DNA of 64,000 bases. It comes from Bugula neritina. Taxonomy: Eukaryota > Animalia > Bryozoa. The translations under genes were made by a program, and so were the position numbers. The stretch spans positions 8,070,581-8,134,580 of the forward strand of contig OZ037767.1 of NCBI GenBank assembly GCA_964035545.1, given 5' to 3'. The notes beneath the pieces are model-generated. The model searched no databases, had not been told where the DNA came from, and was given only the letters and a program-made list of their open reading frames with translations. Every line of letters starts with the position of its first letter. The stretch's first letter is position 1. Shown piece after piece: positions 2,654 through 63,759 of this stretch.

Positions 2654-2729
2654 ATGAAGGTTGGTGTAGAAAGATTCTGGTTGCTGATTGTGATGTACTC
2701 AGTATGTCTTTCAGTCAGCACTGCTCAAG
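2654..2729 (+). CDS. Gene A exon 1, signal peptide
   Basis: [25 protein letters not shown] followed by phase-1 donor G|GTAATG; conserved at 46758-46833. Confidence 0.8.
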
Positions 2730-5700
2730 GTAATGCATATAATAAACTGTTTAAGTATTTCTCATAGTTTAGAGTTTCTCTATGAAACTGTTTTTCTTTG
2801 AGGATGTTTTCCAGCAAGACTATGAAAATATGTATTTACAGGCTGATTATAAATGTCTGTACCAGTGCTGTGCATGCATGATGCTTATTGAATCACTATC
2901 AAATATTTCATTTCTAAGCAACTCTATCTTCTTATAAAGTGCTTCAAATATTTTTCTTGTTGAATGCTTTTTATTAGGTTATGTTTATTTTATGAGTATT
3001 TTATTGACAATACAGTAAGGGTGTCTATTGACTAAATGATTTTTCTTTATTGACCTTACCAGAGTCAAAATTTGCTGTACCACAGGCAGTAAAACTAATT
3101 TTCACTCAGCTTGTTTAAAGCCCCATGAGTTAGTTATGTTAATTTGAATTTTAATGCTGTCTAGTATGAAGTATAGTGTAAACTGTTTTTTGAATGCTGC
3201 ACCCGTTGTGGAATTTGTAGAAAGAGTATCAGGCTAGTAATAAACATACAATTAGCTTTTTATGTACAACTTCTAGCTGTGTCACTCTTACGAATAGCAT
3301 TCAATACACTTTTTTTCACAAAACTGCATTCAGCTACCATATTAAAACATATTAGCTTCATTCACTTTGAAGGTATGAGTTGTGATAAGAAGTTTGTATA
3401 CTCCTATGTGATATAGAAATTCTATATAAAGGAATATATTATATAAAACTATTTCATGATATAGAACTTGTACATGTACAAGTTTTATATAATATAATAG
3501 TATATGTATATAGTATTATATATAAAAAATATTTCTGCATGGACTTAATATATTACTATAATGATTGCAGATAATCTAGCTCTAAATTATAAACCTTGTC
3601 AACAATCATCCACTTATGAGGGGTTTCTGGCAGAAAAAGCAGTTAATGGTAACCTAAAGGATTTCGCCCACACTTTAGATAAGCCTGGTGGAAACTGGTG
3701 GATGGTAGATTTAAAGGAGAAGTTTCATGTCAGCAGCATCAAAATATACAACAGACAGGATAATAATTGTCAATTCTGTATGTATAATTATAACAGATAT
3801 ACTAGTATAGTATGGTACTATAGTATGATTTTCAGTGAAGCAAAGTATTCAGTTTAATTCATCAAGTTAACAAGTTTTTTTTGCAGGAATTCTAATTTTT
3901 CCAAATGATGCTTTGTTTACTATTTAAACACATTATATACAAATGTTATGAGATCCTTTTTTACAACTTTAGGTTACAGACTACAGAAGATTTACATCCT
4001 CACGTCTGCTGAAGATAAACCAGGGAAGCCGACTGTAGCCAAGGACGGTGACTGGATGATCAGATCATACAGAGAAAAACCATATGGAGCTGAAGCTACT
4101 GTGATATTAGAATCTGATGTTCTTGTTAGACATGTGGCTGTATACAGTGTTCACACAGAAGCTCTCTCATTGGCTGAAGTAAAAGTTTATGAACAAGACT
4201 GTAAGTTGTACAGTTTATTGATATCCTTGGTCTAGCTTTTCTCAGAAAAGTTTCTGCTGCAATCAACTGCAATAGACTCTGTTTCATGTACTATACTATA
4301 AATAACAAATTAAACAAATAAAACTATGCAGTTGCAATCTGCAGAGCACGGTAGCTCTCCATTTGGTAGCAATAATCTAAAGAACGGCAACTTGAAAACT
4401 TAGAAAATTAAAGCTGTTTCAAAACAGTTGAAATATCAAAAAGTTTTTATATTTTAGCTATACTAGTAGAGAAAAAATATTATTATGGTTGCTCAACAAA
4501 ATCTCAAACGAGAAATATCATCATTTGTAGAGTAGTTCTAGTTATAAAGTGGTAAATATACCAACAATGTTCAATAAAGCAAGTTTGACTCAGAGATTCT
4601 GAACATTTGACACCTTCATCAAAGTAAATGATTTGTTATACAGTGTCAATATAAGATTTGTATAATTTCTAAATACTTGGTTTCTAATTAGAATATTTTA
4701 TTAATGAAAGCATCATGTTTAGTAACTCAGCTTTACAAAAACATTTTAGTTTGGCTATTTATAAAATTATATGCAGATTCAATATATATAAGGTAACGAT
4801 ATTAGGTTGCCATGCTAACTTCATATGGCTGACAGATTGTAGCTATTCTATATATAATATGTCTTCTAGGAAGATTCTTTATTGCTAGAATTGTAATAAT
4901 AATCTAGTCATCTTTTACTATCAAGCACTGAGTCCACTTCTATCAAGCTCATTGTTTTTTATTCCTATAGTAACAATTTTAATTACAATCAATACTTAAT
5001 CATTATAACATTGTTAATTTAGTCAGGCTATTTACCTACTTATTTATTAATGTTCTGTTTATTTTGGTAAACAGCATTTATGTCATATTCAATAGTGTAA
5101 GTGCTACTGGTACTATTGGGTCTTACTGTTCCTATTGACTGTTGCCATGGCAACTATGGAGTTGATGAACTGTGTGTAAATAGTTGGCAGTCTGTAGGCA
5201 TTGTAGGCACATTTAATAACTTTGCTGTGTGGCCGAGGAGAAATAGTCATGTAAAAAACTTGTTAAGGAGGTATTCAAAGTTCAGTCCTATTTCCTAAAA
5301 TAGTTAATAGGATCAAATAATATCGATATGATTTTATTTAAATATTATAGTTTTTTGTAACCAACTGTTTTACTATCAAATTTATAAGCATTTTTTGACA
5401 TGGTGATAATTGGTAACAATAAGCCATTGAAAAACATGTAATATGATATAATATAGCAACAGCATATCTTCTATTGTTTCCAACTACTTATTTGATTAAT
5501 AAGTAAAGTTGTAGTCATTGAACTACAATTTCTATGTTGTTGATGAAACATACATTTTGTAAACATGGGAATTGCTGAGGCGTTTTGACGTACTTATGCT
5601 CATTTTTTTAAAAACTTTCTAGATAACTTGGCATACAGAAAGACTACACAAGAAAGCAGCACTTACCCCTACGGTGGACATTCTCCAAGTTATGGTGTTG

Positions 5701-62700: not shown

Positions 62701-63759
62701 ACCAAACACAGCTTCTAAACCGACATCAGTATCCAAAAAGACCACCTCAACTGCTCTGCCACCTACTGCCAGTCGTGGTGAGAAGAATTTTACTGCAATG
62801 AAGGTTTCATAATCTATGAACCAATAAATACATGATGAGTCCGTAAAGGTTTACAATGCTACAAACTACATACACTAGTGTAGGATGGTGTATATCGTTA
62901 AACAATGCACAATTTTTCTCCCGTTATATATGTACATTTAATTTGTAATAGTTAGAAATTTGTTTCAGTTGCAAGGAACAGCAACCCACCAGCATCTGTT
63001 GAAGATGGTTTTTATGCTAACACAAATGCAGCTCTATTCATTATTCCTATAAGTCAGCTGGAGGAATACATCACAGACTGTCAAGAAACCATCTCTGAGC
63101 ATTATAGTGTAGGTTTCTAGTTTCTACCTCTGAGCATTATAGTGTAGGTTTCTAGTTTCTACCTCTGAGCATTATAGTGTAGGTTTCTAGTTTCTACCTC
63201 TGAGCATTATAGTGTAGGTTTCTAGTTTCTAAGTCTATTATGACGGTGAAATATGTAGTACCAAGAATTTCATTGACTAGTTAATAAGAAACCTTACCTG
63301 ATTTTTCACTAAATACAAAGCGCATTCACAAATATTTGTTTAATGAGACTTTAACTGTGTTGATATTTAGCTTTTGATCACTATCATACCAGAATGGGAA
63401 AGCAATAGCTATTTTATACGATATAACACATATTCCTATAAAAGCACCAATATTTTTGGTTGGGGCGTGGGTTGGAATTTTTGCTAAGAACATGAATTCT
63501 TTTGCTACATTTCTAATCTAAAACACAGGCTTTTCTCAATTTCTTCATCACTGCACCTACCTCAGTTTTTTTACAATTATAGTTTCAATATTGAATTCAA
63601 CACATAATCTTGTTAGTTGAGCTACTGCATTTAGTGTTATATCGTAAACCTACAGTTCTATTGTTTTTTAGATGTTGATGGCAATTCCAGACCCCAACAT
63701 GTCCATAGCGCTCCTTCCAGAAAACAAAGGCAAGAATAGGTATAAAGGACTTTATCCAG
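46758..63759 (+). CDS. Gene B: receptor-type protein tyrosine phosphatase with 3x F-type lectin + ~5x FN3 ectodomain (3' end beyond window)
   Basis: Exons 46758-46833, 47676-47879, 48074-48298, 48848-49060, 49871-50098, 51121-51351, 52422-52655, 53907-54054, 54160-54347, 54716-54813, 55363-55567, 56416-56519, 56608-56776, 57193-57287, 57426-57624, 57917-58023, 58267-58459, 58917-59010, 59457-59742, 60742-60793, 61142-61283 (TM), 62632-62777, 62969-63108, 63672-63759; frame stays open throughout. Confidence 0.82.
60844..61029 (-). mobile_element. tRNA-derived SINE (same family as 43443-43625)
   Basis: Head GGAGCAGCCATGGTCTAGGGG...GGGTTCGAACCCC; body aligns with the 43.5 kb copy. Confidence 0.75.
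61142..61283 (+). CDS. Gene B stalk + TM exon
   Basis: APEPAPVSKDNSQSTPSDQSKAGPIGGAIGGVVGAVVVVIVIIVSMR, followed by RRR across the next junction. Confidence 0.8.
62969..63759 (+). CDS. Gene B juxtamembrane exon and first PTP-domain exon
   Basis: IPISQLEEYI...ISEHYS, then an 88-nt exon MLMAIPDPNMSIALLPENKGKNRYKGLYP containing PTP motif 1 (NxxKNRY). Confidence 0.8.
63093..63231 (+). repeat. Four copies of a 35 bp unit spanning a gene B splice donor
   Basis: CTCTGAGCATTATAGT|GTAGGTTTCTAGTTTCTAC at 63093, 63128, 63163 and 63198. Confidence 0.95.

Follow-up and report, generated by a model that had tools for sequence, protein, structure and literature searches.

A candidate array of paired receptors derived from a receptor tyrosine phosphatase in cheilostome bryozoans

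Receptor-type protein tyrosine phosphatases (RPTPs) of the types R2A and R2B (LAR, PTPkappa/mu/U) possess a stalk of fibronectin type III (FN3) modules, an Fn3_PTPRU domain with a furin site, a transmembrane segment (TM), an active phosphatase domain D1 and an inactive D2, and furin cleavage occurs within the Fn3_PTPRU-type domain. In the lophotrochozoan Biomphalaria sudanica, the cluster SudRes1 consists of RPTP paralogs that carry a galactose-binding-like domain and have variable ectodomains; a genome-wide association study ties it to parasite resistance (PMC12297450). Paired receptors of vertebrates (Siglec-5/14, Siglec-11/16, KLRC, Ly49, PIR) are encoded by linked genes with a similar ligand-binding part and different signalling ends (PMC3210942, PMC5701461). 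Colonial invertebrates have the Botryllus Fester family and FcoR, clustered birth-and-death genes with recombination between ecto- and endodomains, a Sushi domain and a genetic link to fusion (PMC12582321), and the Hydractinia Alr family of clustered polymorphic single-pass receptors with FN3-like folds and tails carrying immunoreceptor tyrosine-based activation or inhibition motifs (ITAM/ITIM; PMC9546547). Here, a stretch of 64,000 nucleotides from the bryozoan Bugula neritina (the window; positions 8070581-8134580 of OZ037767.1, or C3, within a 216-Mb genome) was analyzed. It contains the receptor gene A and exons 1-24 of the receptor gene B.

The comparison of these genes with their relatives points to a cheilostome paired-receptor array that was built from a receptor tyrosine phosphatase and may work as outlined below, a reading to which a probability of roughly 55% is assigned. 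An RPTP-derived ectodomain is wired after exon 20 either to a TM and a D1/D2 phosphatase or to a TM, with or without a preceding Sushi domain, and a tail with four tyrosines. The initial annotation described exons 1-20 of A and B as collinear paralogs, which agrees with a one-to-one mapping of the exons and an identity of 81.4% over amino acids 1-1117. Nothing is alignable after this position, where the gene models continue, again as annotated, into Sushi, TM and tyrosine tail in A, and into an unrelated TM and a phosphatase in B. Exon 20 is common to both genes, but the likeness is not uniform up to this exon. Recent homology stops shortly past exon 19: no alignment is possible across intron 19, and the likeness of exon 20 is an older homology that is not part of the recent block. 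Most introns of the ectodomain are about 92% identical, and homology of 91-94% also covers about 3.7 kb in front of the ATG, beginning about 1.1 kb before the window. Gene C, located directly upstream of A, open for 1287 amino acids and 84% identical to A, has only about 80 bp of upstream homology.

All domain and database searches were done exon by exon or by database protein identifier. The proposed composition of three F-type lectin domains, FN3 modules and a furin-site domain was recovered: exons 2, 4, and 6 match F5/8-type C (F-type lectin), and exon 19 matches Fn3_PTPRU with an RSKR site, which is lost in the paralogs S6 (L033) and S2 (L034). Exon 2 matches FBP32 (E 6e-9) and streptococcal fucolectins, i.e., solved fucolectin structures, and a lectin homologue from Watersipora subatra also matches the eel lectin 1k12. 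This homology argues for an F-type lectin identity of the domains. In A, the fucose triad H..RxD..R appears to be kept in domain 1, partial in domain 2, and without its His in domain 3. Compared to the motif H-x26-R-x-D-x4-R, lectin 1 reads H-x27-RQD (RQE in B) followed by a 7-residue spacer, indicating a longer loop, and keeps the His and the two Arg residues; lectin 2 is devoid of the motif D and lectin 3 of the motif H. Lectin domain 1 of Watersipora has the canonical fucose motif. The fn3 match of A exon 15 in the Pfam search (E 6.5e-4) was below the cut-off, and the Sushi family profile of A exon 21 matches CR1, CD55, and CD46.

Gene B was predicted to be a phosphatase with its WPD and HCSAGxGR motifs beyond the end of the window, and both motifs were found there intact. 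The gene has 38 exons and is open for 1795 amino acids, so that a truncated or dead B was rejected. A Y_phosphatase domain was found; D1 has intact KNRY, WPD, HCSAGVGRTG and Q-loop motifs, and D2 is degenerate, a pseudo-D2 without WPD and canonical P-loop. With a signal peptide, one TM, D1 and a tandem D2, gene B encodes a complete classical receptor phosphatase with intact catalytic motifs. It shares the FN3 stalk, Fn3_PTPRU with the furin site, the TM, an active D1, and an inactive D2 with the R2A/R2B phosphatases. Instead of the MAM and Ig N-terminus of the R2B enzymes (kappa/mu/T/U), however, B has three F-type lectin domains, leaving Fn3_PTPRU and the furin site as the only features in common with this group. 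The Bugula genes differ from R2A/R2B phosphatases also in being multi-copy and fast evolving.

The initial annotation interpreted A and B as a paired receptor. The same ectodomain is indeed found on two signalling ends, but in a multi-gene array, and the model of a 1:1 pair was rejected in view of about 16 genes with ectodomains of two classes and phosphatases of two old clades. The array covers roughly 1 Mb of OZ037767.1, where 8 genes with a Sushi tail, 3 with another tail, and 5 with a phosphatase are interleaved. Searches of the own genome placed 12 closely similar ectodomains in the interval 7.11-8.13 Mb, eight of the Sushi-TM-tail type (A, C, S1-S6) and four of the phosphatase type (B, P1-P3), with P2, which has no exon-19 match, assigned to its type by position only. 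The second, divergent ectodomain class comprises the phosphatase gene D and the tail genes E1-E3 without Sushi, among which the sequence of E1 was read. The genes S1-S6, P1-P3, E2, and E3 are known from exon matches and short loci. D and E1 are oriented head to head with exons and introns 75-92% alike, and this class also carries both wirings.

The ectodomains and the phosphatases have different histories. In a tree of exons 18-19, B groups with its neighbors A and C, and P1/P3 with tail genes on the minus strand; a clade of phosphatase-type ectodomains within Bugula was rejected (p-AU 0.0013). The phosphatase exon of P1-P3 is 90-92% identical to that of D and 53% to that of B, and the D phosphatase groups with the Watersipora phosphatases, excluding that of B (support 97/92). 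The split between the B and the D/P phosphatases is older than the divergence of Bugula and Watersipora. TM exons homologous to B exon 21 are present in P1 and P3, and the ectodomain ends of P1 and P3 are 85-90% identical to A and B, so that the two comparisons place near-identical ectodomains on anciently split phosphatases. Compared to its orthologue in a second assembly (L048), B has an identity of 83.5% in the ectodomain (dN 0.087) and 97.2% in the phosphatase (dN 0.012), a 7-fold higher dN of the ectodomain; since intron sequences of the two assemblies diverge by 10-20%, cryptic species may be involved, and these values may not be allelic. In 12 of 13 ectodomain introns, B is nearer to A than to the orthologue from the second assembly; the introns form a patchwork, and the relation is reversed at exon 20. 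Non-allelic recombination or gene conversion keeps the ectodomains of neighbors alike across tail types, with the phosphatase staying conserved. A homogenization after lineage splits that is limited to the ectodomain, as shown by these data, is the pattern named merohomogenization in vertebrate paired receptors, where it is species specific as well (PMC3210942).

A search of related genomes, which had been advised, identified the same layout in Watersipora subatra. Two tail genes (P0096, P0098) and one phosphatase gene (P0100, whose first lectin exons belong to a gene model split off upstream) are located within 0.9 Mb of OY755164.1. P0096 and P0098 have three lectin domains, FN3, TM, and a tyrosine tail, without Sushi. 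The ectodomains of these three genes are 76-78% alike and 25-32% identical to those of Bugula; in the tree they cluster by species (support 100/100), and a clade by tail type was rejected (p-AU 9e-45). The same mixed layout therefore occurs in two cheilostome families.

The four tail tyrosines are present in 8/8 Sushi-tail paralogs although the tails are only about 50% identical. The consensus of these eight tails is xY(E/D), PxYxN, (V/L)xYExL, and VYxxV; YxN is kept in seven of them, and the ITAM-like spacing YExL-x10/11-YxxV in all eight. YxN binds Grb2, tandem YxxL/V motifs bind Syk-type kinases, and ITIMs bind SHP2. In the proposed mechanism, lectin domain 1 would bind glycans of the fucose type that are displayed by microbes or by other colonies, and clustering by the ligand would allow a Src-family kinase to phosphorylate the tails. 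The phosphorylated tails may recruit SH2 proteins, of the Grb2 type by YxN and of the Syk/Shark type by the ITAM-like pair; an SH2 scan gave 46 matches without gene identities. Phosphatase members, drawn by the same or similar glycans, would set the threshold by dephosphorylating tails or effectors, and the outcome would depend on which members of the array a surface engages. This would be an innate self/non-self sensor with its brake as an enzyme inside the receptor instead of an SHP recruited by an ITIM.

Several findings weigh against this reading. No strict ITAM is present in any of the eight Sushi-tail paralogs. LEYDIV and LSYEVL of A match the ITIM consensus, and the third tyrosine fits in 7/8 paralogs. 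Together with the TM of A, which contains no charged residue, this indicates that the tails may be activating or inhibitory. Alternatively, the polarity may be reversed or of the same sign: the tails may be ITIM-type inhibitors acting through SHP2, or phosphatase-less decoys that bind the ligand or heterodimerize with the RPTP, and B may act in a CD45-like manner by activating Src kinases. Activation of the CD45 type and regulation of RPTPs by dimerization are established. However, the retention of YxN and of the spacing between YExL and YxxV argues against this explanation, and four conserved tyrosines would be of no use to a pure decoy, so that this explanation is judged unlikely. The last motif of the tail points the same way: Botryllus Fester/FcoR tails contain ITIM, hemITAM-like (PDDVYAIL), and core-2 [A/D]VYxxV motifs (PMC12582321), and A ends with PDDVYAEV, although this is a resemblance only.

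The pairing itself also needs to be weighed. Conversion cannot pass into non-homologous DNA and tandem neighbors convert anyway; because conversion must stop where homology stops, the boundary alone is no proof of selection. The ectodomains of the array are 75-88% identical with different lectin loops, so that a shared ligand is not given. The dN/dS of B against A or C is about 0.9-1.0 in lectin domains 1 and 3 and 0.2-0.3 next to the membrane. Lectin 1 has 15 non-synonymous and 2 synonymous changes between A and B. An excess of pN over pS was significant in no exon (lectin 1, p 0.25-0.74), and positive selection on lectin 1 thus found no significant support. Homology of the Bugula and Watersipora tails was not established (best E 0.001), and the Watersipora tails are without Sushi, which indicates that the tyrosine tail may have been recruited twice. 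As another alternative, the genes may be tandem copies that evolve by birth and death and encode receptors for adhesion or other surface functions (settlement, budding, cuticle, or symbiont housing), homogenized only as neighbors and without functional pairing. Ectodomain similarity tracking position, the conversion of introns and upstream DNA as well, broken copies and retroelements filling the array, and the non-significant selection test would all fit. This possibility is doubtful, however, when set against the mixed layout in two Bugula ectodomain classes and again in Watersipora, the 7-fold higher dN of the ectodomain than of the phosphatase between assemblies, and the conserved tail tyrosines.

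Transcripts were evaluated as contigs of public runs from bulk samples, with the runs X2 and X3 coming from two studies. The joints of exon 19 to exon 20 and of 19872 to 20311 (GT..AG) are present in both runs, and one contig covers exon 20, Sushi, and the TM exon. Other contigs of X2 and X3 have loose ends at 19872 that continue as B exon 21 (28/30 identical in X2); the B-type junction is thus read from loose ends on exon 20 of A. Both junction types occur within the same bulk runs, and the contigs map to exons and one repeat only. Since they are 85-89% identical to A, they derive from relatives of A, namely A/C-like genes of other colonies or lineages. The splice chains of the initial annotation were seen in this way, but not for the own allele of A, which counts against the reading proposed here. 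It would also be expected from an assembly artefact or a non-expressed chimera, that is, from mis-joined haplotypes or a dead duplicate A. S1 and S3 (L025, L028), 99.5% identical over exons 18-19, could moreover be one false duplicate or else a very recent duplication. Nevertheless, an independent assembly (GCA_010799875.2; L048, L049) contains both wirings, and a DNA run, possibly from the source sample, shows 0 differences to A in parts of introns 19 and 20 and at the beginning of Sushi. A and B as mis-assembled haplotypes, a concern of the initial annotation, were rejected on these grounds. Splicing at both junctions was seen in two studies, the reading frames of A and C are open throughout, and an artefact as origin of the design is hardly credible.

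As is general for paired receptors, the array comprises linked genes whose ectodomains are closely similar and whose cytoplasmic ends differ, and a lectin-type sensing would resemble that of the Siglecs. The genes are not homologous to those of vertebrates, where an ITIM with SHP-1/2 opposes a charged TM with an adaptor or an ITAM. In Bugula, the putative brake is the intrinsic D1/D2 phosphatase of B, and the TM of the tail partner A is uncharged. The Alr receptors have Ig-like domains, and we know of no phosphatase partner of these proteins. The Botryllus Fester/FcoR proteins, likewise from a colonial host, have an Ig-like ectodomain instead of lectin and FN3 domains, and no intrinsic phosphatase is noted in the available part of that paper (PMC12582321). 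Because the vertebrate signalling definition does not apply and the ectodomain is unrelated, the array is a member of neither group, though similar in manner.

The absence of a described counterpart, as supposed initially, holds for the pairing: within an incomplete coverage of the literature, no F-type lectin/FN3 RPTP and no pairing with a tyrosine-tail receptor via a converted ectodomain was found. It does not hold for lectin-bearing RPTP clusters, known from snails with an immune link. SudRes1 resembles the Bugula array in clustering, lectin-like domain and variable ectodomains, but has EGF repeats instead of FN3, and the accessible part of the report describes no tyrosine-tail partner that shares a converted ectodomain (PMC12297450). 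The novelty is therefore in the pairing and the conversion, not in lectin plus phosphatase. A literature search of limited coverage found no paper naming bryozoan immune or fusion/rejection receptors. The result is a mapped candidate locus of roughly 1 Mb that bears the evolutionary marks typical of paired immune receptors and is present in two cheilostome families; should the pairing be functional, the germline-paired counterweight of a tyrosine-tail receptor would be a receptor phosphatase. The host is colonial, the condition under which allorecognition had been considered. Tentatively, and with a low probability, the array may be the histocompatibility or self/non-self complex of bryozoans, or one such complex, composed of polymorphic glycan sensors with activating tails that are checked by co-evolving phosphatases with matched ectodomains. 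If so, it would represent a third invertebrate route to paired recognition, starting from an RPTP instead of Ig receptors.

Table 1. Features of the window and of the adjacent end of gene B
Feature	Position	Strand	Remarks
Upstream region of gene A	1..2653	+	Homologous to 43193-46757 upstream of B; blastn 91-94%
Gene A	2654..21055	+	22 exons, all GT..AG, open for 1290 amino acids; signal peptide, 3 F-type lectin, about 5 FN3-like, PTPRU-type FN3 + furin site, Sushi, TM, tyrosine tail
A exons 2-7	3571..10239	+	Three two-exon F-type lectin domains
A exons 8-18	11468..16868	+	FN3-like; two-exon phase-1 modules
LINE-like reverse transcriptase fragment	17465-18253	-	Intron 18 of A only
A exon 19	18306..18591	+	Fn3_PTPRU juxtamembrane domain with RSKR furin site
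A exon 20	19821..19872	+	Final exon common to A and B; splice donor is the switch point; RNA joints exon 19>20 and 19872>20311
A exon 21	20311..20529	+	Sushi/CCP domain; Pfam E 0.003
A exon 22	20748..21055	+	Uncharged TM and tail with four conserved tyrosines: LEYDIV, PVYMN, LSYEVL, DVYAEV
Solo LTR	22524-22831		Related to the Gypsy element at about 35500-41800
Broken second Sushi-TM copy	24478..25129	+	Stops, frameshift; also found behind gene C
Ty3/Gypsy LTR retrotransposon	26167-33651	-	LTRs 99.3% identical, 4-bp target duplication, 1570-codon pol frame
Another Gypsy element	about 35500-41800		1497-codon pol frame on minus strand, inverted partial copy
Interspersed repeat, about 215 bp	43417-43625 and 60818-61028		Many genomic copies; second site in intron 20 of B
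Gene B exons 1-20	46758..60793	+	Ectodomain collinear with A; one-to-one exons, all AG/GT
B exon 21	61142..61283	+	Stalk and glycine-rich TM, unrelated to that of A; RNA loose ends
B exons 22-23	62632..63108	+	Juxtamembrane region
35-bp unit, four repeats	63093-63231		Copies the splice donor of B exon 23
B exon 24	63672..63759	+	Phosphatase motif 1 (KNRY)
B exons 25-38	beyond window, to about 8.1 kb past its end		WPD, HCSAGVGRTG, Q-loop, D2

The second Sushi-TM copy listed in Table 1 was rejected as an alternative end of A due to its stops and frameshift. The Ty3/Gypsy element with the nearly identical long terminal repeats (LTRs) is a recent insertion between A and B. Near-identical copies of the reverse transcriptase fragment in intron 18, which resembles a long interspersed nuclear element (LINE), are transcribed elsewhere, as indicated by RNA contigs. 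Exon 8 of the B orthologue (L048:2876-3019) is 4 bases shorter, with a frameshift that may be an assembly error or a broken allele. An orphan Sushi-TM remnant with a stop is located at C3:8033021-8033704. In the second assembly, the sequence most similar to it (L049, 83% nucleotide identity) is still preceded by ectodomain exons 15-19 and retains an open tail, and the comparison of both suggests birth and death at the haplotype level. Finally, the region C5:2.19-2.32 Mb contains five exon-19-like matches, three of them with no phosphatase match in between, and three phosphatase matches, and is probably a second paired locus.

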